Shown here: positions 1 to 62,928 of the stretch, piece after piece | Layout: each line of letters starts with the position of its first letter | Position numbering within the stretch: the stretch's first letter is position 1 | NCBI GenBank assembly: GCA_950097015.1 | Contig: CATNEN010000011.1 | Span: 5,642,001-5,706,000 of the forward strand | Reading direction: 5' to 3' | From: Macrostomum hystrix | Lineage: Eukaryota > Animalia > Platyhelminthes | Length of the DNA stretch: 64,000 nucleotides | Made by a program: the position numbers and the translations under genes | The notes under the pieces: model-generated | Database searches by the model: none | What the model was told of the DNA's origin: nothing | What the model saw: the letters and a program-made list of their open reading frames with translations, nothing else

Positions 1-3000
1 CACTGCCAGAGCGGAACTAGCGTCTGCTTCACTAATTCCGAGGCTCTCCGGATTCTCTTCCAGAACCTTCTTCAAGGCTTCACTGCTGGCAGCGAGATCT
101 TCGGCCTGCTTTTCACTCAGCTTCTTGTCTTTGCCGTCGCCAGCGAGCCAAGACAGCGCCTTCAGTTTGCTGGCTGCCTGGCCGACCTCTTCCACAGCGG
201 CGTCCTTCTCTGCTTCACTCGGCGACTTGGACGACTCGGCTTCCTTCTTTTTCGTCTTGTCAGTCTTCTTCTTTTTCTTGGAGAGCTGAGCGAGCGCCTT
301 GCCGAGCTGCTTCTTTTCAGCGTCCGACAGAGCGTCCAACGGCTTGTCCTTGACGCTGTGTAGCAGCGCTGCAAGCACTGCCTTTTCCTCCTCGCTGAGT
401 CCACTGTCACCAGAAGCGAGCACGTCATCAATCGCATTCACTGCCTCACTGACCGCATTTCGCTCGGATTCAGTTAGTCCGGCAGCCTTGCTTCCGCGAC
501 GCTTCAGCACGTTCTCAGCCAGCTTTAATGCGTCTCGAGCGTTCTCATCTAGACCGGCCTTCTCTGCAGCACTCTTCTCTAATGGACCATCCGATGCCTT
601 TTGCAGTGCATCTCTCAGAGCGGCCTGCTCCACTGGAGTCAGTGCAACAGTCTTGCCACTCTGCTCGGCGTCCTCCACCTTCTTCATCGCCTGAGCCAAT
701 GCACCTGTCTCGTCAGCAGCAGCGTCTAGGGACTTCTGAAGGGCTTTAGCAATGCCCTTTGCCGTCTCGGCGTCGACCTGTCCGTCCGTCTTCGCCAGAT
801 CCGACAGCGCCTTCTTGCTTGCATCAGCCTGCTTCACCTGCTCTAGGCTCTCCTCGACGGCCTTGGCTACCTTGCCCAGAGCGTCTAGCTGCTCAGCCGT
901 CATCGTGTCGCCGGCCTTCTTGCTCTCCAGGGCGCTCAGCACTGCCAGAGCGGAACTAGCGTCTGCTTCACTAATTCCGAGGCTCTCCGGATTCTCTTCC
1001 AGAACCTTCTTCAAGGCTTCACTGCTGGCAGCGAGATCTTCGGCCTGCTTTTCACTCAGCTTCTTGTCTTTGCCGTCGCCAGCGAGCCAAGACAGCGCCT
1101 TCAGTTTGCTGGCTGCCTGGCCGACCTCTTCCACAGCGGCGTCCTTCTCTGCCTCACTCGGCGACTTGGACGACTCGGCTTCCTTCTTTTTCGTCTTGTC
1201 AGTCTTCTTCTTTTTCTTGGAGAGCTGAGCGAGCGCCTTGCCGAGCTGCTTCTTTTCAGCGTCCGACAGAGCGTCCAACGGCTTGTCCTTGACGCTGTGT
1301 AGCAGCGCTGCAAGCACTGCCTTTTCCTCCTCGCTGAGTCCACTGTCACCAGAAGCGAGCACGTCATCGATCGCATTCACTGCCTCACTGACCGCATTTC
1401 GCTCGGATTCAGTTAGTTCGGCAGCCTTGCTTCCGCGACGCTTCAGCACGTTCTCAGCCAGCTTTAATGCGTCTCGAGCGTTCTCATCTAGACCGGCCTT
1501 CTCTGCAGCACTCTTCTCTAATGGACCATCCGATGCCTTTTGCAGTGCATCTCTCAGAGCGGCCTGCTCCTCTGGAGTCAGTGCAACAGTCTTGCCACTC
1601 TGCTCGGCGTCCTCCACCTTCTTCATCGCCTGAGCCAATGCACCTGTCTCGTCAGCAGCAGCGTCTAGGGACTTCTGAAGGGCTTTAGCAATGCCCTTTG
1701 CCGTCTCGGCGTCGACCTGTCCGTCCGTCTTCGCCAGATCCGACAGCGCCTCCTTGCTTGCATCAGCCTGCTTCACCTGCTCTAGGCTCTCCTCGACGGC
1801 CTTGGCTACCTTGCCCAGAGCGTCTAGCTGCTCAGCCGTCATCGTGTCGCCGGCCTTCTTGCTCTCCAGGGCGCTCAGCACTGCCAGAGCGGAACTAGCG
1901 TCTGCTTCACTAATTCCGAGGCTCTCCGGATTCTCTTCCAGAACCTTCTTCAAGGCTTCACTGCTGGCAGCGAGATCTTCGGCCTGCTTTTCACTCAGCT
2001 TCTTGTCTTTGCCGTCGCCAGCGAGCCAAGACAGCGCCTTCAGTTTGCTGGCTGCCTGGCCGACCTCTTCCACAGCGGCGTCCTTCTCTGCCTCACTCGG
2101 CGACTTGGACGACTCGGCTTCCTTCTTTTTCGTCTTGTCAGTCTTCTTCTTTTTCTTGGAGAGCTGAGCGAGCGCCTTGCCGAGCTGCTTCTTTTCAGCG
2201 TCCGACAGAGCGTCCAACGGCTTGTCCTTGACGCTGTGTAGCAGCGCTGCAAGCACTGCCTTTTCCTCCTCGCTGAGTCCACTGTCACCAGAAGCGAGCA
2301 CGTCATCAATCGCATTCACTGCCTCACTGACCGCATTTCGCTCGGATTCAGTTAGTCCGGCAGCCTTGCTTCCGCGACGCTTCAGCACGTTCTCAGCCAG
2401 CTTTAATGCGTCTCGAGCGTTCTCATCTAGACCGGCCTTCTCTGCAGCACTCTTCTCTAATGGACCATCCGATGCCTTTTGCAGTGCATCTCTCAGAGCG
2501 GCCTGCTCCTCTGGAGTCAGTGCAACAGTCTTGCCACTCTGCTCGGCGTCCTCCACCTTCTTCATCGCCTGAGCCAATGCACCTGTCTCGTCAGCAGCAG
2601 CGTCTAGGGACTTCTGAAGGGCTTTAGCAATGCCCTTTGCCGTCTCGGCGTCGACCTGTCCGTCCGTCTTCGCCAGATCCGACAGCGCCTCCTTGCTTGC
2701 ATCAGCCTGCTTCACCTGCTCTAGGCTCTCCTCGACGGCCTTGGCTACCTTGCCCAGAGCGTCTAGCTGCTCAGCCGTCATCGTGTCGCCGGCCTTCTTG
2801 CTCTCCAGGGCGCTCAGCACTGCCAGAGCGGAACTAGCGTCTGCTTCACTAATTCCGAGGCTCTCCGGATTCTCTTCCAGAACCTTCTTCAAGGCTTCAC
2901 TGCTGGCAGCGAGATCTTCGGCCTGCTTTTCACTCAGCTTCTTGTCTTTGCCGTCGCCAGCGAGCCAAGACAGCGCCTTCAGTTTGCTGGCTGCCTGGCC

Positions 3001-36000: not shown

Positions 36001-37663
36001 CTTTTCAGCGTCCGACAGAGCGTCCAACGGCTTGTCCTTGACGCTGTGTAGCAGCGCTGCAAGCACTGCCTTTTCCTCCTCGCTGAGTCCACTGTCACCA
36101 GAAGCGAGCACGTCATCGATCGCATTCACTGCCTCACTGACCGCATTTCGCTCGGATTCAGTTAGTTCGGCAGCCTTGCTTCCGCGACGCTTCAGCACGT
36201 TCTCAGCCAGCTTTAATGCGTCTCGAGCGTTCTCATCTAGACCGGCCTTCTCTGCAGCACTCTTCTCTAATGGACCATCCGATGCCTTTTGCAGTGCATC
36301 TCTCAGAGCGGCCTGCTCCACTGGAGTCAGTGCAACAGTCTTGCCACTCTGCTCGGCGTCCTCCACCTTCTTCATCGCCTGAGCCAATGCACCTGTCTCG
36401 TCAGCAGCAGCGACTAGGGACTTCTGAAGGGCTTTAGCAATGCCCTTTGCCGTCTCGGCGTCGACCTGTCCGTCCGTCTTCGCCAGATCCGACAGCGCCT
36501 CCTTGCTTGCATCAGCCTGCTTCACCTGCTCTAGGCTGTCCTTGACGGCTTGGGCCACCATGCCCAGAGCGTCTAGCTGCTCAGCCGTCATCGTGTCGCC
36601 GGCCTTCTTGCTCTCCAGGGCGCTCAGCACTGCCAGAGCGGAACTAGCGTCTGCTTCACTAATTCCGAGGCTCTCCGGATTCTCTTCCAGAACCTTCTTC
36701 ATGGCTTCACTGCTGGCAGCGAGATCTTCGGCCTGCTTTTCACTCAGCTTCTTGTCTTTGCCGTCGCCAGCGAGCCAAGACAGCGCCTTCAGTTTGCTGG
36801 CTGCCTGGCCGACCTCTTCCACAGCGGCGTCCTTCTCTGCCTCACTCGGCGACTTGGACGACTCGGCTTCCTTCTTTTTCGTCTTGTCAGTCTTCTTCTT
36901 TTTCTTGGAGAGCTGAGCGAGCGCCTTGCCGAGCTGCTTCTTTTCAGCGTCCGACAGAGCGTCCAACGGCTTGTCCTTGACGCTGTGTAGCAGCGCTGCA
37001 AGCACTGCCTTTTCCTCCTCGCTGAGTCCACTGTCACCAGAAGCGAGCACGTCATCGATCGCATTCACTGCCTCACTGACCGCATTTCGCTCGGATTCAG
37101 TTAGTTCGGCAGCCTTGCTTCCGCGACGCTTCAGCACGTTCTCAGCCAGCTTTAATGCGTCTCGAGCGTTCTCATCTAGACCGGCCTTCTCTGCAGCACT
37201 CTTCTCTAATGGACCATCCGATGCCTTTTGCAGTGCATCTCTCAGAGCGGCCTGCTCCTCTGGAGTCAGTGCAACAGTCTTGCCACTCTGCTCGGCGTCC
37301 TCCACCTTCTTCATGGCCTGAGCCAATGCACCTGTCTCGTCAGCAGCAGCGTCTAGGGACTTCTGAAGGGCTTTAGCAATGCCCTTTGCCGTCTCGGCGT
37401 CGACCTGTCCGTCCGTCTTCGCCAGATCCGACAGCGCCTCCTTGCTTGCATCAGCCTGCTTCACCTGCTCTAGGCTCTCCTCGACGGCCTTGGCTACCTT
37501 GCCCAGAGCGTCTAGCTGCTCAGCCGTCATCGTGTCGCCGGCCTTCTTGCTCTCCAGGGCGCTCAGCACTGCCAGAGCGGAACTAGCGTCTGCTTCACTA
37601 ATTCCGAGGCTCTCCGGATTCTCTTCCAGAACCTTCTTCATGGCTTCACTGCTGGCAGCGAGA
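1..37663 (-). repeat. Coding tandem array, 939-bp unit, about 40 copies in window, continuing off the left edge
   Basis: Equivalent positions recur at 752, 1691, 2630 ... 37379. That span is 36627 nt = 39 x 939 + 6. Units differ by only a handful of substitutions. Confidence 0.98.
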
Positions 37664-40600
37664 CTTTTGGCCTGTTCTTCACTCAGCTTTTTGTCTATGC
37701 CATCTACCGCCAGCCAAGATATCGCGATTATTGTTTCTGCTGCATTTGTTGCATTGCTTAGCATTGTCGTTTGCTCTTGTGTGTTTTCCTCCTCAAAATC
37801 GGTTACTTTGCCTGTTCGTTTTTTATCGGATTTTTTCTTTTTCTTCGTAATTATTTGGAGTGCCTGGCTTAGTTGGTTCTTCTGATCGCTGTCGAGTTCA
37901 TTTATTGGGGTGTCTTCTATACTTTGAATAGTGTCCTGAATTTTGGATCGTTCAATCTTAGTTAGGCCGCTTGTTTCCACTGCAAGTATTTTTTTTGTGG
38001 CTTGGATTGCTTCGGCTAAAGCATTTTCATCGTCAGGTGATATTGGCTCTTCTGAGCTGTTTTTCTTTCGGAGGACCTCTGCTCCGTCCTTGATGGTTTC
38101 ACGCGTCTGCTCGTCGAGGCCTGCTTTTTCTGCCGCGCTTTTTTCTAATGGCGCAGCGCGTGCCTTTCTCTCCAAGAATTGGCGCAGAAGCTTAAGTTCG
38201 GTCAAAGTGAAGTTTGTGAACTTGCCTTCTGCCATGCAGCCTTTTAGGTTCGCTAGGATTCCTTGTAGGTCACTGTTGTCGTGCGTCTTGTCACTCTCGA
38301 CAAGAGTTACAATGCACTGCGATAGCTTTGCGATGCGGCTGTAGTCCTTCATTGCTATGAACCGGTTAATGAATTGAAGCTCTCCAAGCAGCCAGATGCT
38401 CAGATCAGCATTCTGTGTGTCATGAACGTTGTCGTGTATTATGTCAGCAATTTTAGCAAGTGAACTAATTTCCTCTCTTGAGAATCTTGCGCCCTTCTCT
38501 TTTTGCTGCAGGCCTTTCATCACTGTGAGCGCTCTCACGGTCTCAAGCCCTGTAAGGCCGAGATCAGTTGGCGAGTCCCGGAGAGACTTAAGCAGTGTAT
38601 TGAAATTGGTCGAAAGGCGTGTTGAGTCCTCTCTGCTTATATCTTTGCGAGGCTTGATGTCCGTTACAAGCATGTCCTGAATGCTAGTAATCGCTTTCAT
38701 GGCTTTGTCGTACATCGCCATTCTGCGGTCCACGGGATTGCGGAAGACGCGAGATCTGTTCGAAACCTGATCAAGCATGTGCGACAGGGTGCGGTTGTCA
38801 GTCCGATTGCGAAATTCGTTGCGACGGACGCGCCGGAGCTGCTGCTTGAGCTTGCTCTGCATTGGAATCGCCAGGTTCATGCTGCCGGTGGCTCGCCTTA
38901 GGTAGTCGCAGCACTCGTGGAGCACCATCTTTTCGGTGTCACCATGATGCTCAAAGTCCAGTAAGGTTTTAGTAGAAGCGATGGCCAGCTTGACGGATCT
39001 CTCGTCGATCGTGATGTCATCCACTTGTACTCGGTTCAATGTTGCAACACCTCTCAAAATTGTGTCACTCTCTGTCATGTCGATGTACCGATCGTCATCA
39101 GCTCTATTTAGCACTGATTGAATGGCGTCCAATGTTGAAACCATTATTGTTCGATCGTACGGTCCAGGAACTTTATTCATTACGGCTTCTATAATTACTT
39201 TCAGTTTAGTCAAATTGCGCATGTCATCATCTGTTGGAGTGATCGGTGTCGTGTAGATTTCGCTGCCCCTGTCTCTGAGAAGAACTTCCAACTGTTGCAA
39301 GAAGTAGCGGTCCCTAAAGGACAGATTCGCAACATCCGACACGCTTGGCGGTCGAGCAGAAGCCACGTACTCTTTGAGTTCACTAACCATTTCAGTGGAA
39401 ACCTTGGCGCACTTATCATTTTCAGCCAGTTGTTCGACATGGGTGCGAAAAGTCTCCAACTTTCGTGTCGGCATGTCGATGCGAAAGTGCAGCGCGTAAT
39501 GCAGCTTTCGCACCTCGTCGCGAGGCAAGAAAATATAATCTCGCTGAGAATTGTGCAGCTTAAATAGTTCCAGCAGGATGTCAGCAATGCGCTGGTTCGA
39601 CTGCTGCATTAGCCGAGACACGCGCACTCGATTGGCTTCGTCCAGAATCTCGATGACACTGGATAGGAAAGTCTCTGGGTCCAGAATGTTGTGCGAAACA
39701 GCACTGCACAAGCGTTCTATGCAGTAGCTGTTTAGCGGCGACAAGCTAATCTGATTTGAGTGATCTTTCTTAGTGAGGATCGCTAGACGGCGGGTAATAT
39801 CGAGAACTGCGTTGTTCAAGGCTGCCTCGCCGTCAGGTGTTTTGCAGGCTTCATAGCAGAGGCGCATCTCACACACAAGCTGTGAGACGTCAATGCCTAA
39901 TCGTTCGTCCATTTCAACAACCTGATTGGCGATAGAATCATGAAGACTTACAGCCAACTCGGTCAAGGCAATGAGAAGTGGATCAACTTCGCCGCCAACA
40001 GCGCCCTGGGGCTCCTTCGATGCCAGCTCGAGCAGTTCTTCGGCAGCACGCAGCCGCTCAGGTAGCTCGCTGTTTGGCTGTAATCCAGCTTCCAACGCTA
40101 CTTGGGTCATCTGAACAAGGTTATCTAGCATAGTTGGGAAGTCAGCATCTAAAGGTGGTTCCTCGTAAATCAGGGCGATGTCGCGCAACTTGTACAGCTG
40201 TTGGCGAAGAGCGTCTAACTGCTGCGAAGCGTCAGTCGGACGCGGCGGTGCATTAATATTGCGCTCGTAGGTGTCTAAAATTTCTACAGGCGGTGGTCCG
40301 CCAACGACAGCCGGCTGAAGACGCCGCTGTTGCCTGGCCGAGCTTATCGCCGAGTCATTCAGCGAGTTGCTTGCTTGCCGGGCTGGCTGGGACAAGTCAC
40401 GATTGATCCTTCTAAGAAGTACTTCAGCCATGTACTCCTTACCGAATTTATCGATTCCAGGAAATCGCACAACATCCCAGAGATTGTAACGCTCTTCGTC
40501 ACTGAGTTCAACCAGACGGAGAAGAGTCGACAGTAGCTCAGAGATGTCCATCTCCAACAAGTGACGACGGATGTCATCAGAATGCACCGTTAACAGCTGC

Positions 40601-42449
40601 TCACGAAGCTCCTCGCGCGGGCAAGTAGCCGCAGCAGCTGGGCTTAACACCGATGGAGCAACAATTACGATGCTTGGAAGCAGCATTGCCCCGTCGACCT
40701 CAGCTAGGTCTAGCTTAGGCTCATCAGCAGGCTGTGACGCTACAGTTACCGCGAATTTCGGAATTCGCAAGAATTCAAACCGTTCTCCAAGATCATATGC
40801 TTTGCCCAGCTCACTATGAGGAAGCTCAGACTCTAGGCAGAAGCCTTTCTCCGTGAGTCGGTGCCGGCCGTCCTTCGATGCGTCGAAAACTATTTCGGTG
40901 CGCAGAGTTCGCATGTTCGTATCCACAACGTCCAAAGTCGTGCACGTGATCGATGGGCCGAGCGTCACCTTGTGCATTGCTCGGGTTGCGACTCTGCGAG
41001 CTGCTACCTTTTTCTGGCCCAGCGGCCGCACAGAGTGAATCAGCTGAAACTTCGGCGCATCATCGCCAGTTTCGTTATTCTCTCCAGCCAGCTTTGAAGC
41101 GTCCAAAGCTGGCAGAATCACTGGAACGAATGAGCTTTGATTTTCTTTTGAATTGGCAGGAGTTACTGGCGGCGATCTTGGCGGCGAAGGTGAAGCCGGC
41201 TTGGCGAAAGTGGCTTGAAGTAAAGTCGAAGAGAAGCCCAACTGTGGCTGAGAAACTTCACTAACAGGATCTTGCCGGTTCTCAACGGTTACTATTTCTG
41301 TCGCTTCAGCCCTGTAGCTGTACTCGAGGTTGCGAGTTTCAGCACGACGCTTTTGCCGACTTCGCTCGGCGGCCGCAATCTCCAGCTCGTCTGGCGGCGG
41401 CTCGTCCACAATTAGCAGGGCTTCCTCGCTGCGTCGCAGGCGCTGCCGCTCTTGCATTTGTCGGCGCCGCTCGCGCACATTCTCCATGCGCAGATCCTGA
41501 TGAGATATAGCTCCGGCCGGCCTCATTAGTTGGAGTCGATCGCGGCGTAGATCGCTAGTCGCCGGCTGTTCGCTAAGTGTCTGATGCACCTTGGCAACCA
41601 GATCAGCAATCGAGCTGCCGCCAGAGGCTCCAGTAGCGGCCGAATTGCGACGAAACGGCGATGGCGAGGAGGCAGTCTCAATAAGTGGCGCAACGTGAGG
41701 CGGCGGGCGTGGCCTCTGACTGGGCAGATTTTCTAGGATCTCGCTGATGCGCTGGTGCCTCTCAGCAACCGTGCCAAGGCCCAGTCGAGGCGCGCTTGCG
41801 TAGCGCATCCTGTACTGCTCGATGCCATCCTGATCGCCAGTGACCAGGGCTGTAGCACCCCTTTGAAAGATGCCACGCGGGTCTTGAATCTCGTAGTCGC
41901 CGCTGGACGAGCCGCCAGACGAGCGGGCCGCTTGCGCCACGCTGCTTGGTGGAGCCGGCGGTGTTGGATGGATGGCATTTCCCGGCCAGGCGGACCGCTT
42001 TACCTCGAAGTCGGACGCGCTTAGCGTCGGCATTGACGTCGCCTGTTCGATTGGCGACACGCATGCGTCTCGTCGCTCTGGGAGCTGCTGCTGATGCTGC
42101 GGCTGGGTCGACTCAAACACAGAGCTTGCCGCCGACCAGCGCAACTGACTGTGGCTGCTCTGCCTGTTGGCCGCTGTGCTAGACGATGACGATGACGATG
42201 ACGACTCGCTCGAGTGTCGTCGCCGCGACCCTTTGGCCTGCTGCTTCTGCCGCTGCTGCTCCGACTGCGGCTGCGGTTGTTCATGCGATGCGGGGCGCTT
42301 TGGTCGCAGCTTCACCGAAGGCGGTCGCTGGCCGCCCGCTTCCGCTAACGAGGCCGACGATGGGCCGGTATTAACTCGCTTGTGGATTCGGGCCGGCGGT
42401 GGCTGCTGCTGCTGCATGCCGGCCAATGCTGATGGACTCTTTGAGTCGC
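1..42449 (-). CDS. Giant exon (>=42.4 kb): about 1270 aa unique, diverged repeat unit, about 40 x 313-aa repeats. Open to the window edge apart from six +1 insertions.
   Basis: Acceptor tctctctcctttgtacag|GC GAC in phase 1 leads into the 8106-aa ORF (18106-42426). Further ORF pieces (14349-18284, 13895-14527, 13180-13974, 12921-13265, 11813-12907) continue the same repeat. Positions 1-11955 repeat the same stop-free unit. Confidence 0.85.
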
Positions 42450-45400
42450 CTGTACAAAGGAGAGAGATGACTGCGAATGAAGTTCTACGAGTATGATGAC
42501 CGTGAATTTATGCACTGTAGGCAACACAATCACACTAGTTAATATCAATCAATCAAGGGGTTGGAGCCTACTGGTTTGAGCGTCGGACTCACGAGTTGAA
42601 GGTCCAGGGTTCGATTCCCGACTGCACTGGAACAATTAGTGTCCTTTAGCAAGACACTTAACTCTACATTACTTTAGTTAACTCAGTTGTTAAATGGCTG
42701 CCAGCATCATCTGGAGTAGTTGAGGGTTGGTGTGGCGTCCCCCCCCAGTCTATGGACTGAACATGCGGCTGTGGGGTCGGCTGCATTTCTGGCCGAGTTG
42801 GGGTAGGTAATAAATAATTACAATTATCATCATTTTTACTAATTTACGCAGCTACAATATGAATTAATTGGAGTGTGCTTTGCATGGTCAAGCCGACCAA
42901 TATACACTCGCAGTAAAAATTAATTTGCCTTCAACTTAAACTCTAAAAAGAGAATTACAGTGACAGACAAAGAACGAATGAAGGCATTAGAAATACTCAA
43001 CACGGGTATCCTAGGTCAACCTGACCCGAGCGGCTGCGTAGAGCTTAGAGAAAGAAATCGAGATCCCCCACCTCAGAGTTGGCACACAGACCCGCAGTCA
43101 CTAAAACAGGCATAAGCACAACACACAATGAGATCAGAGCCACATTCCGTTTGTATTCGAAGGCACGTTGGAAAGAAAACAATTGATTTACACTGTTAAA
43201 CTTTAGTCTCTAATAAAAAAACTTATTTTTACTCATTTAGATACAAATTGATTTCAATGCAGTCGCACGGTAGAAAATAATGATATAATTGCAGGAGAAC
43301 TGCGGGCAATGGCCCATCATTCGGTAACACTAGACTCGCAGCCAGCTAGTAGGCCCATTCTACCAATTTCGCTGACTCCTGAGCACACACACATATATAC
43401 TGTACACAGGCACACTGTAAGCCTTGCAAATACGCTTCAGAACATTGTATTTGCATGGCTCACATGATTCGCGTACACGACGAGGCGTCCGTGGATCGAT
43501 ACGGCCCAGGAATGTGAGGAAGAAGTTCGGCGAGCGTTCGCTGGGGAGCGTGTGCGTGTGGGACAAAGAAACAGCTGCCCCTGTGTTAGCAATCTCCCAG
43601 CGTTTCTCCCTCTCTCCCCATTCTGCCTCTGTTGTGCGCGCTGCTTGAATTTAAATACACTGGAAGCGAGATCGGCAGAGCTTCGCTGCCGCTTTTCATG
43701 TGACTCCGGAGTCCACACAGAAACGGGCCTCTGGCCCGTGGAGCGTTTATCTCTCTGTTGCTGTGGCAGAAGGTAACAGGAAGGCAAAACTTTCCTGTTA
43801 TACACACGCTCACACAGGTGTGTACATCTGCCATTACTTTCTCATCGTCAGGCAGTGTACACTCTCACTGTGCCTTGGAGGTACTTTAATTAGCTGTAAT
43901 TTTAGCCGGAAATCACATTGAAATTACCTCGTCGGCGCCGGAGAAATAAATCTGTCACTGCCACAGCCAAAGCAGGCAGCAGAGGTCTCACACTGCGACC
44001 GGCGAGTGTGATTAAGGAGGCCGCATTTCTGTGCGACATGACACGAAATTAATTCCACGCGAATGGAATATTGTATTGGGCCTTTAAAAAATAGAAGAAA
44101 ATGTACATCAGCTCTCTTCAGTCACATTTTTACTGCTTCAGTTTTTTTCGCTGTTATCTAATTCGCCACAGACAACTGTTAGCATGCACTGTTCACAGTG
44201 CAAAACTTCTCGGCTAGACTCACTTTCTATGCATTCCGTGCCTCACGATTGAGTACATTGCATTACAGCAAAATGGCTCAGTGAAAATTAGCTATCTAGA
44301 TCTAAACGCGCTTGAACTGAGAAGGACTGAGATTGTCGAAATATCTTTGAGAATGCTCAGCATTTTAGTGCAGAGCAGTACTGAATAACTAAAACATGCA
44401 GATGACACTTTAGCTGAATCTCGGTGAAGGATCAGGAATAATGGAGGATAAGTATCCTCAGTGAAAGATCAGGGATAATGGAGGATAAGTATCCTCAGTG
44501 AAGGATCAGGGATAATGGAGGATAAGTATCCTCAGTGAAGGATCAGGAATAATGGAGGATAAGTATCCTCAGTGAAAGATCAGGGATAATGGAGGGTAAG
44601 TATCCTCAGTGAAGGATCAGGAATAATGGAGGATAAGTATCCTCAGTGAAAGATCAGGGATAATGGAGGATAAGTATCCTCAGTGAAGGATCAGGAATAA
44701 TGGAGGATAAGTATCCTCAGTGAAGGATCAGGGATAATGGAGGATAAGTATCCTCAGTGAAAGATCAGGGATAATGGAGGGTAAGTATCCTCAGTGAAAG
44801 ATCAGGGATAATGGAGGATAAGTATCCTCAGTGAAGGATCAGGGACAATGGAGGGTAAGTATCCTCAGTGAAGGATCAGGAATAATGGAGGGTAAGTATC
44901 CTCAGTGAAGGATCAGGGATAATGGAGGATAAGTATCCTCAGTGAAAGATCAGGGATAATGGAGGATAAGTATCCTCAGTGAAGGATCAGGGATAATGGA
45001 GGATAAGTATCCTCAGTGAAGGATCAGGGACAATGGAGGGTAAGTATCCTCAGTGAAGGATCAGGGATAATGGAGGATAAGTATCCTCAGTGAAGGATCA
45101 GGGACAATGGAGGGTAAGTATCCTCAGTGAAGGATCAGGGATAATGGAGGATAAGTATCCTCAGTGAAAGATCAGGGACAATGGAGGATAAGTATCCTCA
45201 GTGAAGGATCAGGGACAATGGAGGGTAAGTATCCTCAGTGAAGGATCAGGGATAATGGAGGATAAGTATCCTCAGTGAAAGATCAGGGACAATGGAGGAT
45301 AAGTATCCTCAGTGAAAGATCAGGGATAATGGAGGATAAGTATCCTCAGTGAAGGATCAGGGATAATGGAGGATAAGTATCCTCAGTGAAGGATCAGGGA

Positions 45401-48400: not shown

Positions 48401-51400
48401 GCTTGAAAAAACCGAGGCTACTAGCTGAAAGATCATTTTAAATAGGCAAGATGAAGATAATGAATGGCAGCGAAGGAATTTTGGCATTAGCTAGTGAGTG
48501 CAGAGGGTGGCGTGTTTTTTTCTTAATTTTTCATTTCGAGTCCCAAAATGATTGCACGGGCACATACTGATGGCAAGCGCGACCTACAAGCACACAAGCA
48601 ATAAGGACTGTGAATGGCACATTGTTCAAATATGACTGAATAAATTAAAGAAAAGAAAGACAAGTTTAGAAGAAAAAAACGGGAAATTCGCTGCTTATTC
48701 AGCCCAGAAAGAAAAGCTTGTGTTGTGACTAAACTTAAATTCTTCAACTCACCAGCGGTAGAGCGCAGTATAGTCAACCGCGGCGAAGCTGACTCCTGTG
48801 TACTCTGCGACCCCGCACTGTCGGATACCGAGGGCCTGACAGAGGATTGTTGAATGGAGAAAGACATCTCATTTGCAAATTCCATAACATTATAAACGCT
48901 TAAAAGTTAGTCAATGTGAAACTGGGTGGGAATAATAATTTTAATTATAAATGCATTGGCTTTAGATCAGGGTATTCATCAAATTTACTAAAAAACTACC
49001 AATTATAATTAGTGGACAAGTAATATAGTTAAGTTGAAATTCGAATGAAATGTCACTTTTACTTCTATGCCTTTACTTCGCGGGGCTTTTTTGTGGGGGG
49101 AGAGTTTATGAATGTACATTGCCCAATGTACATACAATGTACATTTATTTTAGAGACAAAATTTTCCTTTCCGCCAGCGGAGCCCTCAGTTTGGCCAGGC
49201 CCAGGCCAGGCCAGCGGTGCTACTAAAGCGCCCCCAGGCCCTTCCTAATTGCACTCATTTCGGATTTTTCCGTATCCGAAAGTTTTCATGTCATCAAAAA
49301 ATCCCTGTCTCATCTCACCACAGCCAATGCTATCTGCTGTCAGTCTTTAGATTTTTAAATTATATATTGCTACCGGCCCCTAATTTATCCCTGCAAACAG
49401 TAAAGCTAAGAAGAGCGATTTCTGGTCTCATTCTTTCTAGTTCCATGATACTCGGACTTGACGTCGGAGAAAATCAAGCTTATCTAATAACCTTTTCACG
49501 ATCCCAGATCGTCCGCTCACCCAGCAGTTGCGACCGTCTCAATCTTGGCCTGCCGCAGCTCCTCTTCCTCACTCTTCTCGTTCTCGTCGGTTTTCTCCAC
49601 ATTGCTCGTCGGTGTCGCCTCCAGCGCAGCCGGTTGAACAGCCGTGGCAGCATTTCCGCTGTCCAGACTGTCCAGGCTGCCTTCCGCCTCATCAGCGGTA
49701 TCGACTGCCGCATTAGCTTCCTCCTCACCAGCAGCTTCTGCGGCGGCTTTTCGCTCCCTCTCTCGCTGCTCTCGCTTCTCCTCGGCGCTGGAGATATCGG
49801 CGCCTTCCAGGCTGTCCTCCATCAGAGCAGCCGGGCGAGCCATTGGCACCGGGCCGCTCTGCTCCGTGTACACGTTTGACGCGTGCGGCAGGGGCCGAGC
49901 CCCCGCCCCAATGGACTTCGGGCTGCGTTGCAAATCGGGCATCGACACAAAGTTGCGCTCGATGTCATCTAAGCAGACCAGGCCTTCGCTGGCTCGCCGA
50001 GGATGTAGCTGATCGTCCGGCTGCGATGATGGATCGATTGTCAGCTGCTGAACTGACGACGATACGGTGGCCATCGGCAGCATAGGCCGTTGCTGTTGCT
50101 GCTTCTGTTGCACAGGTTGTGCTGCAGGTTCAGCCTCTAGCGAGTCTTCCGAGTGCGTATCCTCATTGTCGTCGTTATCTTCTGGACCAGCTCCCTGGCC
50201 AGACGGTTTCCCGCCGGGACGATCTTGACGGAACTCGACGGATCGCCTTGGTGCTGGCTCGTGCGGCATGAGAAATTCGAGGCTGACTTGCCTGTAGGGC
50301 GAAAACTCGATGGCAGTCACCTGACGGCTGCCCTCGGGCTGCACAACCTGTGGCTGTGGTTGCTTCTCCTGCGGCTTCTGCCTCTGCCGCTCCCGCAGGT
50401 GTCCCCCACTGCGTCGCTTCGATGATGCCACCGAGGACTTGCCAGGCACGGCCAGCGCTCCAGCCGGCAGGCTCCGCCGATTTCCTGGATCGAACTCGTA
50501 ACCGCCGGCAGCTTTCGCACCCTGTCTCTCAGCAGTCAGATCATCGACAGACTCCTCTGGCACACTGAGCAGACTGGAACCACCGCTCAGGCGAGCCGCT
50601 GCAGCAGACGGTGTCGAGGCGGCAACTGGCCCAGTTGTCCGGCTGACAACCGCGCCACCCAGGTAGCGACCGTCTGGCCCGAACTTTGTCTGAACTCGCC
50701 GACTGCCTCCGCGACGCAGCGGCACTGTCGTCTCCTCGACTGTCGCTTCTGCAGTGCTCGAATCAGGAGTCTGTGGCAGCTCGAGATGCGGTGCACTCTG
50801 TGCCGACCTCATGCGAACGGCGCCTTCGCTGCCGCCTCCGCTGGCTGTCCGTCTGCGAGCCAGCTCTGCCTGCGGTGGAGGCCCTGGATAGAGCCGCGAA
50901 GTAACCGCCTGGGCGCGCTTCGACGTGGCTGGACGCTTTTTTACCACCGTGGAGCTTTGCTTCGAAACCCCAGAGGCACCTTCGGCTGCTAGAGGGGTCG
51001 CGTCGCCAGCTGTGCTTTCCGCTGATTCATCAGCCTCGAGGGCCTCTGCAGACATGCCAAGGTCGTTATCTGAGCGCACCTTGGAGAGCTGACGTCCGGT
51101 TGGCTTCCGCCTCGTTGTAGATGACGATGGCAGCTGATGCTTCTTCAACACATCGTCGGTCTTGCGATCAACGTACAGCTCCAGCGCTTTGCGTCGACGC
51201 TCCAGCGCGTCTGCGCGCTCTGTTTGAGAGAGAAGCGCTGCCTGGCGCTGCTCTAGGACTTCGGCGTGTCGCCGCCTTGCCTCCTCCAGTTCAGCCTGTG
51301 GGTTTAAATTGTGTTGATGCTTGTTAAGACCTTGAAAAACTCCAGCTTCTAACAATGAGTCTCACCTGTTCGGCCTCCAGTAGCGTCTCCAACTCCGTCA

Positions 51401-57400: not shown

Positions 57401-60400
57401 CATGGCCTTGATCAACCCCAATCCGGCAGCCATCTCACTCCATGGCCTTGACCAATCCCAATCCGGCAGCCATCTCACTCCATGGCCTTGACCAATCCCA
57501 ATCTGACAGCCATCTCTCCTGGCCAACCCAAATCCGACAACCACCTCACTCCATGGCCTTGATCAACCCCCAATCTGACAGCCATCTCACTCCATGGCCT
57601 TGACCAACCCCAATTTGACAGCCATCTCTCCTGGCCAACCCAAATCCGACAGCCACCTCACTCCATGGCCTTGACCAACCCAAATCTGACAGCCATCTCA
57701 GTCCATGGCCTTGACTGACCCAAATCTGACAGCCATCTCACTCCATGGCCTTGATCAACCCCCAATCCGACAGCCACCTCACTCCATGGCCTTGACCAAC
57801 CCCAATCTGACAGCCATCTCTCCTGGCCAACCCAAATCCGACAACCACCTCACTCCATGGCCTTGACCAACCCTAATCTGACAGCCACCTCACTCCATGG
57901 CCTTGACCAACCCTAATCTGACAGCCACCTCACTCCATGGCCTTGACTAACCCCAATCTGACAGCCATCTCACTCCATGGCCTTGACTGACCCAAATCTG
58001 ACAGCCATCTCACTCCATGGCCTTGATCAACCCCCAATCCGACAGCCACCTCACTCCATGGCCTTGACCAACCCCAATCTGACTTATCAAGCATTTAAAG
58101 TTTTTAATCCAGTTTTCAATCGAGCTCAAAAGTACATTGAAAGTCTAGCAATCTTTAGTATTGACAAAATTTAAGACCGTAACAGTATTATTATATAATA
58201 GCGAGGCGTCTAGGTAAACTAGAAATATGAAAGGTATAGTTAATTAGTGTCCAGTCGCTTGAGAATAAAAAATGCGCTTAGATTAAGTAAGAATAATCAA
58301 TACCTCAAAGTCTTCGAATGCGCCACGCGCCTGTTGAAAGTAATTTTGACAAATAAAATTTGAAGAAAAAAAACTGTTGAGCAGTTTTACGCTTTCCTTG
58401 AAAAATCAAACTCCTACTGAACTCACCCGATCCTGCCAGCGCCGTCGCCACTCTTGAGTCAGGATTTCGGCCTGAGGAAAATAATAACAAAATAGAAATT
58501 GTATTCAAGCTATTAAACTGACAAAACATGTCAAACAAAATGAAAGCTTGGTTTAAGTACCATCCATGGGCACTGCCAGTTGCTAAGCTGATATCATATC
58601 TCACGCTAAACCAAACCCGCATAGAAGGAATTTTGAGTCGTTTACTAATTCTGAGTACAAGCTGTAAAACACACACACACCACAAGCTGAACAACCATTA
58701 GGCAGCGATAAAGTAATAAAATATTGTTTTTGTGTCACTTTGTCGCCATTAAATAGTTTTCTTAGAATTACTGAATGCCAAGTTTTGTTTAAATGCTGTC
58801 GAATGGGACAAACGAATGCTTTGACTGCTCAATTCGTTTGAGTGAGGCAGAACTAACAATTGTTTCGAAAATAATGTGGATTATTATAACAAAGATAAGT
58901 AAAATTGTTGTTTTCTATGCTAAAGCATTAATTCTACTCTACTTTTTTGTCTCTCTGCTCGAATAGTGTGTCCACTCTCTCTCTCTCTCTCTCTCTCTGC
59001 TTTAACTGTGTGTCTACTCTACCTCTCTCTACTCTAACAGTGTGTCTACTCACCCTCTCTCTCTCTGCTCTGTGTCTACTCTACCTCTCTCTACTCTAAC
59101 AGTGTGTCTACTCACCCTCTCTCTCTCTGCTTTAACTGTGTGTCTACTCTACCTCTCTCTACTCTAACAGTGTGTCTACTCACCCTCTCTCTCTCTGCTC
59201 TGTGTCTACTCTACCTCTCTCTACTCTAACAGTGTGTCTACTCACCCTCTCTCTCTACTCTAACTGTGTGTCTACTCTCCCTCTCTCTACTCTAACAGTG
59301 TGTCTACTCACCCTCTCTCTCTACTCTAACTGTGTGTCTACTCTCCCTCTCTCTCTACTCTAACTGTGTGTCTACTCTCCTTCTCTCTACTCTAACTATG
59401 TGTCTACTCTCCCTCTCTCTACTCTAACTGTGTGTCTACTCTCCCTCTCTCTACTCTAACTATGTGTCTACTCTCCCTCTCTCTACTCTAACTGTGTGTC
59501 TACTCTCCCTCTCTCTACTCTAACTGTGTGTCTACTCTCCCTCTCTCTACTCTAACTGTGTGTCTACTCTCCCTCTCTCTACTCTAACTGTGTGTCTACT
59601 CTCCCTCTCTCTACTCTAACTGTGTGTCTACTCTCCCTCTCTCTACTCTAACTGTGTGTCTACTCTCCCTCTCTCTACTCTAACTGTGTGTCTACTCTCC
59701 CTCTCTCTACTTTAACTTCTTAGACAGGTTTTTCTTAAATTTTAAAGTTAAATTTGTTAATTATCGCACACATCAACTCACCTCTTGATTCTTCTCAGAA
59801 AGAATCACCTGCAGATTGTCCATGCTTTGCACGCGCTGAAATGGTTTTGTTTAAGAAATTAAGCATTTTTCGTGCTTTTTCTGCATTTTTCTACTTTAAG
59901 TAGTCCGAAAATATAATATATGTTATTTTTAAGAAGCGGCAAGAAAAGTCTAAGACAACAGCAACTTTTTAGAAAACTTTTTATAGCATATAGCTGCCTA
60001 TGATGAAAGGTTTTTACGAAAATTCTGATAAGCATGTAAAGCTTCCACTTATGACAAAATTTAATGTAACTGTCAGTTTTTGTTTATTTCAAGCGACAAC
60101 CTGCTATGGCAGTTTTGTTTAAATTGTGCTCGCTCAGCACAAAACCGACCCGTGGAATACCTCGAAAACAATAAAACAAAAGAGGAAAATGTTTCACGCT
60201 GCCCACTCGAGTTGAAACAGCTTTGTGTGGGCGTCAAGTTTGATAATAATTCAACAAACCAGAACGAAATATTCATATTTTTCGTAGCGAAGACAAGCAA
60301 TGAAGCACAGAGTTGTCCAATGTTTCAACTTGCACTCAAATCTCTATTGGCGAGCTCATTGTGTAGGCGTTGAATTTCAGTTCTCAGCTGGCTGATCAGC

Positions 60401-62882
60401 TTGGCTGTTGGGTCCTGAAATAAAATCATATAATGTTAATTAAAATATAATAATAATAATAATAATTGATTACACCTGCCCCAATTGGGTCAGATGTGCA
60501 GCCGACAGCACAGCCGCAGCTAATGCGCGGCGCATCTGAAGGCTGCGTACGGCTGTTCAGTCCACGGACTGGGGGGACGCCACACCCACCTTCAATTATC
60601 CCAGCTGATGCTGGTACCCATTTAACAGCTGGGTGAACTGAAGCAATGCAGAGTTAAGTGTCTTGCTAAAGGACGCAAATTGTTCCAGTGGAGTCGGGAA
60701 TCGAACCCCCGACCTTCAAGTCGTGAGTCCGACGCCCTAACCACTAGGCTACAACCTAGTTAATTAAACTTGCTATAGTTCAACTGTCGATACTTAGTTA
60801 AACAAATTATTTCATTCAGATTAGGAAATACTGAAATTAGTTTATTAACCTTTTTATCAGATTTTAATCAGAGTATTTACATTATTGCTGCGATATTTTG
60901 TAATCATTACATTGCTTTAGATTAGTTTTGTTATATTAGTCTACGTAAATTGATTTTTAATTACCGAAATTCAGAAGAAATTAAAAATACATATTTTTGT
61001 CTCAAATATATTCATACGTTTTCAAACTACAATTTCTTGACTAAGTTTTGTTTATCTAGCAGCAAATGTGTTAAAAACACAGTTTAGATGAAAAATAGTA
61101 AAAAATGTTAAAAGTACTTTTGGTTTTTTACTTTCATCGTTTTAAAAAGAGAAACAATCACACCTCATTAACAGACGGCCTGTTGACAATGTTCTTGGCT
61201 TGCTGAGCATAGCGCAGTGTGTTGATTGTCTCATTGTAATAGATATCAGCTGGTGTCACGGCTGTAAGGCGTTATTAATCAGATCGGTTTAACAAAAGGA
61301 GTTATTTTAAAAAGCCTATTATTATTCTTCATTTAAGACCAACGACCGCACCCAATTTTTTTGCTAATTCTTTTCTTCACATTTCATTGCAATTAAAAGA
61401 TAAATGAGCTAATTACAAAGGCTAATTCTCTGTCCCTCCTTTAGAGCAGAAGAAGAATAAAATTTTCACATATTTTTTCTGGTTTTCTCTTTGAAAGAAT
61501 TCGCTTTTCAAGAAACTAACACACACACACACGCACGCACACACGCACACACGCACGCACACTACTCAGAAAGCTGGGTCGTGACCCGACAAACATGCCT
61601 GAGCAGCTGACAAACAGTGCCGTAGGTGATAGATTCACTGTAGAAACTTTCCTCTCACACCATTGAATTTAACAGCAGGACCATTTCGCCGCCCGTTTTT
61701 ATACCAAAGGCGGAATTCCCTCCCCCCTGAAATTATTTTGGCAGCGCCAGAATGCTAACAGCGTTGGGTGGTGGCTGATTGGTTGGCAGACTAGGCGAGG
61801 GTGTCCTGTGGTTGAGCTGCGCCTAATATTTTGGCTTGATCAGTGAAATTGGTGAAATTCGCGTCAGGGTGTCCATAGCGACCTAGTTCTGCCTGTTGTA
61901 GCCCTTGAAGGTCCAGCAGTCCGTCTAGATCAGGGGTAGGCAAACTTATTTGCTGGTGGGCCAAAGAGAGAGCTTAAAAGACGACAGCGGGCCGCATTGA
62001 CTGTATAAATATGAGATAGAGGAGAGATGAGACACAGGAAAGATGGGACACGAGAGAGATGAGACACGGGAGAGATAAGATAGGGAAGAGATTAGACACG
62101 GGAGAGATTAGACACGGGAGAGATTAGACACGGGAGAGATTAGACACGGGAGAGATTAGATACGAGAGCGATGAGACACGGGAGAGATTAGACACGAGAG
62201 AGATTAGACACGAGAGAGATGAAACAGGACACTGTAGATGTCAGAAGGGGCAACGGGCCGGATTTGGGAGCTTCGAGGGCCGCATCTGGCCCGCGGGCCG
62301 GAGTTTGCCGACCCCTGGTCTAGATAATGGTAGGTGACCACCGAAGACGGAGATGATGCAGGCACACTCGGGTGACATGCTGATCAATTTTGAAAGCCTG
62401 GCAAGGCCGCACTGAGGCGCAGTGCTAATTCGTGTATAGGTGTGTGTGAAATACACTAGCGCCAGAACCATTGAATATCTCGACGGTGCAAAGAGCAGGC
62501 GACATGATTCTTGCTTCAGAAGATGCGCAACAAAAAGTTAGCCCATGTCCTTGAGTTTCGTGTGCTTGCGTTGTTAGGTTCGGGTGCAGACCCGCTTTAA
62601 TAGTTCCACCTAAGCTCGTACGTCTATAAGTTAAGCTCTATAAGGTGTCATAACTCCGACTAATGGGCTAGCTAAAAACAATGATAAATGTCAATAAATC
62701 AACAGTTCACTCACTGGCGATCATTGTGGTGTTAGAATTTCCACCCAGCGAGTCTTTGATCAGCCAGGTGAGCACTGAGTCCCTGTAGGGGATGTGGATG
62801 TGTCGCCTCCGGGATCGCCTCTGATCTTCAGTCTGATCCGAGCTCACCCGCTGCTCATTCCAGGTCATGAGGGACTGGTTGG
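1..62882 (-). CDS. Giant kinesin-3 gene (KIF16B/STARD9-like): motor C-terminus, neck coil, FHA, coiled coil and giant tandem-repeat tail. Partial at both ends; >=14 exons in window.
   Basis: Hand-spliced exons join in consistent phase and give ...[77 protein letters not shown]...[11 protein letters not shown]...[13 protein letters not shown]...EHC...[17 protein letters not shown]. This is the kinesin-3 order motor end, neck coil, FHA. Subfamily assignment is from remembered KIF16B/STARD9 motifs, not a database search. Confidence 0.85.
37664..38620 (-). repeat. Diverged founder-like copy of the 313-aa unit
   Basis: [19 protein letters not shown]... aligns with [19 protein letters not shown].... 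[14 protein letters not shown] is identical, and [18 protein letters not shown] aligns with [18 protein letters not shown]. Confidence 0.85.
42559..42830 (+). mobile_element. tRNA-derived SINE, family 1 (CORE-like central domain)
   Basis: tRNA-like head with B box GGTTCGATTCC, central GTCCTTTAGCAAGACACTTAACTC...GTTAAATGG, and an AAT-rich tail. Homologous to the copy at 60445-60758. Confidence 0.8.
43350..43900 (-). mobile_element. SINE-like family 2 copy interrupted by about 370 bp of extra sequence
   Basis: The reverse complement carries CAGTGAGAGTGTACACTGCCTGACGATGAGAAAGT..GGCAGATGTACACACC.GTGTGAGCGTGT and GTGTGTGCTCAGGAGTCAG. These blocks are about 20 nt apart in the 52873-53140 copy. Confidence 0.55.
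44421..45640. repeat. Intronic 37-bp minisatellite (CCTCAGTGAAGGATCAGGGATAATGGAGGATAAGTAT), about 33 copies
   Basis: Period read directly, e.g. CCTCA at 44456 and 44493. Confidence 0.95.
45641..46406. repeat. Intronic 42-bp minisatellite (CCTCAGTGAAGGATCAGGGGTAATGGAGGATAAGCTATGACA), about 18 copies
   Basis: Directly abuts the 37-mer and is a length variant of it. It gives rise to the spurious ([14 protein letters not shown])n ORF. Confidence 0.95.
46445..46540 (-). CDS. 96-nt exon (V)[31 protein letters not shown]
   Basis: ttctatctag|TT AAA ... ACA G|GTGACA, phase 1-1. An alternative in-frame donor ATAG|GTGAAT lies 9 nt further on. GC-rich island in an AT-rich intron. Confidence 0.65.
47175..47430. 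repeat. Long inverted repeat (55-bp perfect arms) plus an adjacent imperfect hairpin; palindromic/MITE-like element
   Basis: 47175-47229 is the exact reverse complement of 47292-47346. A second hairpin at 47339-47429 is bounded by CCGGTTGG/CCAACCGG and contains AGTTAATGGCG/CGCCATTAACT. Confidence 0.85.
47480..48215. repeat. Intronic 28-29-bp AT-rich minisatellite (AATGAACCATTAAAATACCCTAGATCGAT), about 25 copies
   Basis: Period read directly (ATGAACC at 47481 and 47510). Confidence 0.95.
48753..48835 (-). CDS. Exon [27 protein letters not shown]
   Basis: ctctgtcag|G CCC ... GCT G|GTGAGT, 83 nt, phase 2 to 1. This exon is needed to reconcile phases. Confidence 0.75.
49521..51295 (-). CDS. Large exon: coiled coil followed by S/P/A/E-rich disordered region
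   Basis: Main part of ORF 49517-51355. A 70-nt intron at 51296-51365 ends in CCCACAG|GCT. Donor GCT GG|GTGAGC. Confidence 0.85.
51366..51906 (-). CDS. Coiled-coil exon ([17 protein letters not shown]...LLEAEQ)
   Basis: ORF 51324-51884 extended to the acceptor CTGACCAATCACAG|G. Donor CAG|GTGAGA. E/Q/R-rich heptads. Confidence 0.85.
52017..52070 (-). CDS. Microexon [17 protein letters not shown]
   Basis: ctttcag|A CAA ... GCC AG|GTGAGC, 54 nt, phase 2-2. Confidence 0.7.
52270..52405 (+). mobile_element. SINE-like family 2, 3'-truncated copy
   Basis: B-box-like GAGCTCGATTCC followed by GGGCCAACCTTCAAGGCACAGTGAGAGTGTACACTGCCTGA, shared with the 52873 and 43350 copies. Confidence 0.55.
52873..53140 (+). 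mobile_element. SINE-like family 2 copy
   Basis: A-box-like GAGTGGCAGAGCAG, B box GAGTTCGATTCC, then the conserved body shared with two other copies in the window. Confidence 0.6.
53850..53941 (-). CDS. Exon [30 protein letters not shown]
   Basis: cttttttag|CCG ... TCC AG|GTGAGG, 92 nt, phase 0 to 2. Fits neighbouring phases. Confidence 0.75.
53981..54450. repeat. Intronic 19-bp minisatellite (ACAGGTGAACTCAAACAGA), about 24 copies
   Basis: Period read directly (GTGAACTCAA at 54061 and 54080). Confidence 0.95.
54576..54775 (-). CDS. FHA domain, second exon
   Basis: cacag|GA CTA... gives [66 protein letters not shown], then |GTGAAA. The EHC and G-x-I-x-FG...F-x-FN-x-P motifs are typical of kinesin-3 FHA. 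Confidence 0.85.
54936..56450. repeat. Intronic 20-bp minisatellite (TCTGAAGATCCCACATCCCA), about 75 copies
   Basis: Columns align within the 60-nt lines. It fills most of the intron that splits the FHA domain. Confidence 0.97.
56472..56625 (-). CDS. FHA domain, first exon
   Basis: [51 protein letters not shown]. Donor CTG A|GTAAGT. Acceptor GAGCAG| is a possible NAGNAG. Confidence 0.85.
56848..57042. repeat. GC-rich 15-16-bp minisatellite (GGTTGTGGCGCCCCCT), about 12 copies
   Basis: Period read directly (GGTT at 56881 and 56897). Confidence 0.92.
57394..58082. repeat. Imperfect 40-41-bp minisatellite (CTCACTCCATGGCCTTGACCAACCCCAATCTGACAGCCAT) with recurrent short deletion variants
   Basis: Repeated CTCCATGGCCTTGA core. 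A short variant CTCTCCTGGCCAACCCAAATCCGAC recurs three times. Confidence 0.9.
58427..58471 (-). CDS. Microexon [15 protein letters not shown] (kinesin-3 LTxxWxxKW motif)
   Basis: tttcctcag|GCC ... CGG|GTGAGT, 45 nt, phase 0-0. The W-x3-W motif precedes the FHA domain in kinesin-3. Confidence 0.85.
58975..59715. repeat. (CT)n microsatellite grading into a 32-bp CT-rich minisatellite
   Basis: Pure CT run at about 58975-58997, then CTCTACTCTAACTGTGTGTCTACTCTCCCTCT units (ACTCTAAC at 59581 and 59613). Confidence 0.92.
59782..59835 (-). CDS. Coiled-coil microexon [18 protein letters not shown]
   Basis: tttcag|CGC ... GAG|GTGAGT, 54 nt, phase 0-0. The other two frames contain TGA. Confidence 0.75.
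60334..60414 (-). CDS. Neck-coil exon [27 protein letters not shown]
   Basis: Acceptor tttcag|GAC. Matches the kinesin-3 neck coil (EDPNxKLIRELRxEIxRL type). The 3' end requires a phase-0 donor, and the only candidate is AGT|GCAAGT. Confidence 0.85.
60445..60758 (-). mobile_element. tRNA-derived SINE, family 1, full length with target-site duplication
   Basis: Head GGTTGTAGCCTAGTGGTTAGGGCGTCGGACTCACGACTTGAAGGTCGGGGGTTCGATTCCCGACTCC with A and B boxes, CORE-like body and (ATT)n tail. Flanked by the direct repeat GTTAATTAAA at 60435-60444 and 60759-60768. Confidence 0.88.
61164..61261 (-). CDS. Kinesin motor exon: switch II-proximal helix 6 and neck linker
   Basis: ttacag|CC GTG ACA CCA... 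gives (T)[32 protein letters not shown], then |GTGTGA. 98 nt, phase 1 to 0. Confidence 0.92.
61931..62317. mobile_element. Non-autonomous hAT (Charlie-type) DNA transposon / MITE, 387 bp
   Basis: TIRs CAGGGGTAGGCAAACT and AGTTTGCCGACCCCTG (15/16 match). Perfect 8-bp TSD GTCTAGAT at 61923-61930 and 62318-62325, fitting the NTCTAGAN target preference of Charlie-type hATs. Confidence 0.93.
62030..62225. repeat. 16-bp purine-rich minisatellite (GGGAGAGATTAGACAC) inside the hAT MITE
   Basis: Period read directly (62101, 62117). Confidence 0.88.
62715..62882 (-). CDS. Kinesin motor exon: loop 12, HIPYRDS, LxxSLGGNS
   Basis: Translates [55 protein letters not shown]. Donor GCC A|GTGAGT at 62715/62714 is firm. 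The 5' boundary (CCATTCAG| at 62883) is tentative because the frame stays open to about 62988. Confidence 0.85.
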
Positions 62883-62928
62883 CTGAATGGTGCGGATGGC
62901 GCGAGCAATGGTTTAGACTGCGATTCTT

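Follow-up and report, generated by a model that had tools for sequence, protein, structure and literature searches.

A giant 939-bp repeat exon beside kinesin-3-type exons in the flatworm Macrostomum hystrix: a candidate gene for a very large kinesin

The locus examined here raises the question of whether one minus-strand gene of the flatworm Macrostomum hystrix joins a kinesin-3-type head to a tail of dozens of near-identical modules. A preliminary description, made from the DNA letters, had proposed such a protein, a kinesin-3 predicted to exceed 15,000 residues. We followed up this proposal by computational analysis of the same 64,000-nt stretch of contig CATNEN010000011.1 (here called the window), and the features on which the argument turns are listed in Table 1.

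Table 1. Minus-strand features of the window, ordered by position. A slash marks an exon end.
Feature	Position	Strand	Description
Tandem array	1..37839	-	~40 units of 939 bp, 313 codons each
Six 1-nt insertions	11957, 12934, 13224, 13910, 14361, 18145	-	Break the array frame
Old diverged module copy	37840..38646	-	30.6% identical to the consensus over 268 aa
Unique head of the giant exon	38647..42449	-	1,267 aa, transcribed
Acceptor AG of the giant exon	42450..42451	-	Strong polypyrimidine tract before it
Small exon of the preliminary description	46540-46445	-	96 nt, in-frame, optional, doubtful
Exon B	48835-48753	-	83 nt; ends CTG/GTGAGT; in phase with E9 and the giant exon
TGA	49517..49519	-	Inside the GTGAGC donor; ends the kinesin frame if donor 49521 is unused
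E9	51295-49521	-	1,775 nt; disordered acidic/Ser/Gln-rich tail
E8	51906-51366	-	541 nt; coiled-coil-like, conserved in M. lignano
E7	53941-53850	-	92 nt
FHA profile match (PF00498)	54540-54821	-
E6	54775-54576	-	FHA second half
E5	56628-56472	-	"PHLL" linker and FHA first half; 71% identical to the start of A0A1I8JIW6
E4c	58330-58304	-	Small coiled-coil exon
E4b	58471-58427	-	Small coiled-coil exon (15 residues)
E4	59835-59782	-	Small coiled-coil exon
E3	60414-60334	-	Neck coil (begins with a 21-residue stretch); donor GCAAGT, GC-AG intron
E2	61261-61164	-	Last motor helix and neck linker (31 residues)
E1	62882-62715	-	Motor end: NQSL, basic loop RRSRRRH, then a 20-residue stretch
Kinesin profile match (PF00225)	62710-62988	-	Profile positions 253-302

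RESULTS

A recent array of 313-codon modules in one open frame

From position 1 to ~37.8 kb, the window is a uniform array with a GC content of 58% and a strong strand skew. The region from 42.5 to 64 kb is AT-richer, with GC-rich islands and many minisatellites; one of these, with a 24-bp unit, occupies positions 62940 to 64000. A scan for copies across the 64-kb window recovered 40 head-to-tail copies of 939 bp (35 of them exactly that length) and showed that the array extends past the window start. Measured with the unit at 20001-20939 as reference, copies are 98.6 to 100% identical; the first array copy (37839-36901) is 90% identical to the consensus at the DNA level. Each unit is a single open 313-codon frame on the minus strand, so that the tandem array of at least 40 modules of 313 residues put forward in the preliminary description was confirmed.

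The array frame carries on upstream, through unique sequence, to position 42507. Within this stretch, and in the same frame, lies an older copy of the module whose similarity to the consensus unit is highly significant (composition-corrected E value of 6e-23) at 30.6% identity, which indicates that the module already existed as protein when the recent amplification took place. For the first array copy compared with the consensus, dN/dS is 0.55. Among the 35 regular copies, only 35 sites are variable, 12 synonymous and 23 non-synonymous; the resulting pN/pS of 0.58 rests on counts too small to decide whether it lies below 1. Variants form blocks that are ordered along the array, and these look like what would be expected of real local duplications. 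The GC3 of the array exon is 0.65, similar to that of the other exons, and Rfam gave no match in 37000-64000.

We considered whether the array is instead a non-coding satellite that is open by chance. Being very recent and homogenised, its copies provide non-independent evidence of openness; against this reading, however, the unit length is a multiple of three with a 313-codon open frame, the array frame is continuous with a unique open frame of 1,576 codons, the upstream protein copy at 30% identity is older than the array, GC3 matches that of the other exons, and RNA is found for the neighboring part of that exon (see below). We regard a satellite as extremely improbable.

The encoded module is 19% Ala, 14% Lys, 12% Leu, and 11% Glu, has a net charge of -13, and contains no Phe, Tyr, or Cys. 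An AlphaFold2 model of two units was all-helical, with ~12 short helices per unit (mean pLDDT of 70) and a low-confidence Lys-rich linker (10 residues) between units. The module has no detectable homologue: a single unit matched no Pfam family, a Foldseek search with the two-unit model recovered generic helical bundles only (vinculin, HPt arrays; TM of <0.2), and a search of the ESM Atlas returned nothing above 0.76. A Pfam ARM_CPL3 match obtained with three units disappeared when a single unit was used and was taken as compositional.

The unique head of the giant exon comprises ~430 Ser/Pro/Gln-rich, low-complexity residues followed by an all-helical part; AlphaFold2 modelled it as helical at low confidence (pLDDT of 38). 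The head belongs to no Pfam family, and an exhaustive HMMER search with 1,200 of its residues against 1.84 billion representatives gave 0 matches. A word-indexed search with the head and with its first 60 residues, the latter aimed at junction-crossing transcript fragments, also returned nothing. An in-frame ATG at 42417 lies 10 codons into the exon, and no signal peptide was predicted at this candidate start.

Six single-base insertions interrupt the array frame

The array frame is open over 18109-42507 and again over 1-11994 and is interrupted between these stretches. By aligning four units of odd length to the reference unit, we located six 1-nt insertions; there are no deletions, and none of the insertions falls within a homopolymer. 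As assembled, the giant exon that starts at 42449 meets its first stop at 18108, after 8,113 codons. When the six bases are removed, 14,147 stop-free codons run from 42449 to the window start. The coding length of about 15,300 codons given in the preliminary description presupposes that those bases are removed; as assembled, the frame is broken.

For published Macrostomum genomes, PacBio reads were assembled with canu, and polishing with Arrow and Pilon followed (PMC10468722). Because the changes are insertions only and are clustered in 6 kb of near-identical repeat, they are probably uncorrected long-read errors. The same clustering could also be read as the mark of an array that is decaying or mis-assembled, in which the frameshifts are real or the copy number is a product of assembly. 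This would cap the giant exon at 8,113 codons (~21 modules) and the product far below 15,000 residues, and it would be compatible with either one gene or two. Near-identical 939-bp repeats over 40 kb are indeed hard to assemble and polish, and a pN/pS of ~0.58 among copies is not clearly below 1; but all six changes are insertions, no stop-creating substitution occurs in the 14,147 codons, 35 of the 40 units retain exactly 939 bp, and the blocks of variant haplotypes follow an order along the array. On these grounds we consider decay or mis-assembly unlikely and retain the six insertions as probable sequencing errors.

Kinesin-3-type and FHA exons at the other end of the window

Pfam profiles supported the proposed motor end and FHA domain (PF00225, E value of 5e-11; PF00498, E value of 1.3e-5). 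Only the last ~85 motor residues fall inside the window; the P-loop, switch I, and switch II would be located past position 64000, on the far side of the 24-bp minisatellite. Their best matches among solved structures are KIF13B, a KIF1C-like protein, KIF14, and KIF1A (E values of 2e-10 to 1e-8), and the C-terminus lies outside the window; these matches do not establish the KIF16B/STARD9 subtype named in the preliminary description. Exon E2 matches kinesin helix alpha-6 and the neck linker. A basic loop 12 (K-loop), RRSRRRH, is present ahead of a stretch of 13 residues at the IPYRDS position and aligns with the KNKNK loop of KIF13B. The neck coil in E3 is followed by the FHA domain, which is the kinesin-3 layout. 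No Pfam match to CAP-Gly, PH, PX, or START was found in the in-window pieces scanned, the C-terminus being beyond the window.

The near-universal motif SLxxLGxVIxAL of alpha-4, the switch-II helix at the microtubule interface, is absent from E1, where a different sequence (14 residues) occupies its place; in the 12 residues of the alpha-4 region, WNEQRVSS stands instead of LGxVIxAL. When the motor end is aligned to solved motors with phmmer, the alignments begin only past this motif. A frameshift was considered as the cause and rejected, as the other frames run into stops. With so degenerate an alpha-4 motif, the designation "motor" is not assured.

Downstream of the motor end, conservation in Macrostomum lignano was used as a guide. 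A 614-residue open frame (49520-51361) is 59% identical to M. lignano A0A1I8HTB2, annotated as an FHA domain-containing protein; with A0A1I8JIW6, a member of the same cluster, the match reaches into the first FHA exon. No record was found for the genomic locus of this M. lignano homologue. Other cluster mates were unrelated bacterial 50-mers and were discarded. Taken together, E5 to E9 match M. lignano FHA domain-containing proteins at 57 to 71% identity, with E9 57 to 60% identical to both models. Both end at the last full codon of E9. Because their 5′ ends, too, are truncated at exon borders, the two models may be no more than fragments. E8 may contain an optional in-frame 78-nt intron at 51739-51662. 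A literature search on Macrostomum with STARD9 or kinesin found nothing relevant.

An in-phase chain into the giant exon

Exons were placed from the M. lignano and kinesin matches together with splice motifs, and the chain that they form is an in silico prediction. Twelve exons from 62882 to 48753 total 3,321 nt. For E3, a GT donor was dropped in favor of GCAAGT, which restores phase. Joined to the giant exon at 42449, the 12 exons contain 0 stops. The reading from E9 through exon B into the giant exon is in phase, while E9 joined directly to 42449 is not.

GT/AG splice sites are present, as the preliminary description had it, at 49521, 48835, 46445, and 42449. Its phase-consistent chain was likewise reproduced, at 3,417 nt rather than 3,441 nt when the optional 96-nt exon is added, which keeps the frame. 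The step from 46445 to 42449, on the other hand, proved not to be required: the junction from 48753 to 42449 is already in phase, so that the 96-nt exon is not needed. This exon encodes a Cys/Arg-rich peptide unlike its neighbors.

The frame of E9 ends in G/GTGAGC, the donor type of nearly all introns of the kinesin gene. Any GTGAGC donor in phase 2 brings a stop with it at once; taken alone, the TGA at this position is therefore hardly informative. Two separate genes are nevertheless a serious alternative. In that arrangement, the kinesin-3/FHA protein would end at this TGA or in an unrecognised terminal exon after exon B, the giant repeat mRNA would begin by spliced-leader trans-splicing at 42449 (or 48835) and be translated from the ATG at 42417, and the match in phase would be due to chance. 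An AATAAA at 49149, ~370 nt downstream of the TGA, would suit an end there, but a natural stop would not be expected to fall within a consensus donor, as this one does: we estimate that only ~5% of natural stops would resemble G/GTGAGC, which supports use of the E9 donor. That both M. lignano models stop at the end of E9 is also what two genes would predict, but these models are plainly truncated at 5′ exon borders too. No homologue of the giant-exon head was found joined to any kinesin among the 1.84 billion representatives or in the word-indexed search, which again favors separate genes; set against this, in-phase reading across the two junctions would arise by chance in ~2 of 9 cases.

Exon B bears on the same choice. 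It is a GC-rich island in which the GC content rises from 33% to 60% precisely where a good acceptor lies, and with this compositional switch it looks internal. For its donor to be used, an acceptor must lie downstream, and RNA supports none but 42449. On the side of two genes, ~20 to 30% of Macrostomum genes are trans-spliced to a leader that ends in ATG (PMC10468722), and the giant exon has its own in-frame ATG after 10 codons.

RNA across the giant exon and its acceptor

RNA evidence was drawn from Logan contigs of four 2020 runs from one organism. We placed contigs on 42300-48299; exon B, 6.3 kb from 42449, falls outside that stretch. The contigs were taken as RNA because the exon side of 42449 is covered at a depth of 2 to 4 and the intron is mostly empty. 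A 175-nt contig of run X4 tracks the genome over 42300-42450 and then continues for 8 to 16 letters that do not fit, and a contig of run X1 stops at 42445. With one contig leaving the genome at 42450 and the other stopping at 42445, we conclude that splicing does use the predicted acceptor at 42449.

No upstream partner of 42449 was seen among the contigs of the four runs on 42300-48299. The preliminary description had named reads across the 46445-to-42449 junction as a check; that joint did not appear in the contigs of the four runs, and none of them covers 46445-46540. RNA was also absent from 42700-43299 in the four runs, and RNA consequently gives no support to a private first exon a short way upstream of 42449. 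The remaining contig matches were high-depth repeats (42500-42699 and 43300-43899) and mismatched pieces (47019-47438).

Sampled words of 38000-42449 were present at 71 to 89% in the four runs, and those of E8-E9 at 22 to 53%. As a rough estimate, with k-mers seen once dropped, the depth of the giant-exon head is ~1.6- to 3.8-fold that of the kinesin exons. The better coverage of the head (0.71 to 0.89 versus 0.22 to 0.53 of sampled words) favors two genes, as does the use of acceptor 42449 with no partner seen on 42300-48299, a stretch that excludes exon B. Running against two genes, RNA 31-mers of the 37-bp minisatellite intron are present, and they suggest that the primary transcript begins well upstream of 46.2 kb. 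Weighing these points with those from the exon chain, we regard two genes as a real possibility, though on the doubtful side.

DISCUSSION

On balance, the evidence tips slightly toward a single mRNA that joins the kinesin/FHA exons to the giant repeat exon. Such a transcript would come from one very long minus-strand gene that encodes a kinesin-3-type head, a neck coil, an FHA domain, and a disordered or coiled tail of ~900 residues, and whose kinesin exons would be spliced via the 83-nt exon B to a terminal-side exon of >42 kb. The giant exon would contribute the orphan head of 1,267 residues, the single old copy of the module, and ~40 near-identical modules, the array having probably expanded in recent time, through unequal exchange, from an older state with two copies. 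The modules may form helical bundles strung into a long and flexible chain, along which basic patches recur at regular intervals. Speculatively, this chain could serve the kinesin head as a very large multivalent tether or spacer, perhaps one that follows the acidic microtubule surface.

The full form of the proposal is put forward more tentatively, at a little under an even chance: one kinesin-3 chain exceeding 15,000 residues, with a tail of recently amplified 313-residue helical modules separated by regularly spaced polylysine linkers, would be the largest motor protein known and might serve, in some type of flatworm cell, as a tether or ruler that is bound to microtubules and works on the micrometre scale.

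If the two parts are joined, the kinesin would be about three times as large as STARD9 and would carry a type of tail that no described motor has. It would exemplify a protein that gained ~13,000 residues by very recent tandem amplification, and it would offer a natural test case for the effect of tail length and multivalent basic patches on motor tethering. Even as a separate gene, the 14,000-codon orphan repeat gene, with an expressed head and no homologue among billions of proteins, would add to the giant repeat proteins of Macrostomum. The locus also illustrates how annotation can miss such a gene when six bases in a repeat are left uncorrected.

Several known proteins invite comparison. 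The Leishmania K39 kinesin-related protein has a kinesin head followed by a long tail of 39-aa tandem repeats. Its repeats are short, whereas those of the flatworm are folded-looking helical modules of 313 aa; the lineages are unrelated, and the link to a head is predicted in the flatworm. K39 is thus an analogue in principle only. The flatworm head resembles KIF13B, KIF14, and KIF1A in the basic loop before the 20-residue stretch of E1, the neck linker, the neck coil, and the FHA domain. It differs from them in alpha-4, where WNEQRVSS stands for LGxVIxAL, and in the absence of CAP-Gly, PH, and PX from the window.

For size, the closest case is from the same genus. Mlig-ap2, an adhesive protein of M. 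lignano, is 14,794 aa long, is repetitive over large regions, and lacks homologues outside flatworms (PMC6410801). Macrostomum therefore does make proteins this large. Mlig-ap2 is secreted and Cys-rich, with domains of the vWD, TSP, and EGF types, whereas the module described here is all-helical and lacks Cys, Phe, and Tyr.

STARD9 (KIF16A), a vertebrate kinesin-3 of ~4,700 aa, shares with the flatworm locus the order of motor, FHA, and then a very long, mostly disordered middle. Most of the STARD9 middle is encoded by one giant exon. The STARD9 motor is described as carrying a loop insertion (PMC4310736). Beyond motor and FHA, no sequence match was found between STARD9 and the flatworm protein, and STARD9 is without an array of near-identical 313-aa modules; the flatworm protein, if joined, would be the larger by that ~3-fold. 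The C-terminus of the flatworm protein, where a START domain would be sought, falls outside the window. STARD9 is the nearest known analogue in layout.

Expressed repeats upstream of the giant exon

In the intron upstream of 42449, where the giant repeat exon, a putative part of the kinesin-3/FHA gene, begins, two stretches (42500-42699 and 43300-43899) had RNA contig depths of hundreds to thousands in all four RNA runs. One of the two is a tRNA-like SINE fragment, and joints at 43389-43818 exchange ~415 bp for ~25 other letters, in several variants. Both stretches are expressed repeat families rather than exons of this gene.

Splice sites and minisatellites

The donor of the neck-coil exon E3 was read as GC because any GT donor puts the next exon out of phase. 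At the NAGNAG acceptor of the first FHA exon, either choice keeps the frame, and the products differ by one Gln. Within the coiled-coil-like exon E8, a 78-nt stretch missing from both Macrostomum lignano homologues (A0A1I8HTB2 and A0A1I8JIW6) is a possible optional intron.

Minisatellites (units of 16 to 40 bp, up to 76 copies) occur in most of the larger introns, with at least one in 8 of the 12 drawn and also in the intron upstream of E1, the exon encoding the end of the motor. The 24-bp minisatellite that lies just before E1 has no stop in any of the three minus frames, and one of these frames is rich in Lys/Arg/Asn.

Features of the exons and introns
Feature	Position	Strand	Remark
GC donor AGT/GCAAGT, end of E3	60334	-	GC-AG intron
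78-nt stretch within E8	51662-51739	-	good splice sites, in frame, open
NAGNAG acceptor (gagcag), start of first FHA exon	56625-56630	-
Minisatellite	44420-46387
Minisatellite	47479-48185
Minisatellite	53980-54451
Minisatellite	54935-56449
Minisatellite	56848-57039
Minisatellite	57394-58083
Minisatellite	58985-59717
Minisatellite	62021-62220
Minisatellite	62940-64000		24-bp unit

Reading frames of the array and the motor

Each 939-bp repeat unit also carries, on the plus strand (752-37885), a 158-codon open frame starting with ATG. The skewed composition of the antisense strand is the most likely source of this frame.

In E1 (62715-62882, minus strand), WNEQRVSS stands in place of the kinesin alpha-4 (switch II helix) motif LGxVIxAL, while NQSL and an 11-residue motif, which flank it, are both retained. 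The kinesin head may be a noncanonical or inactive motor.
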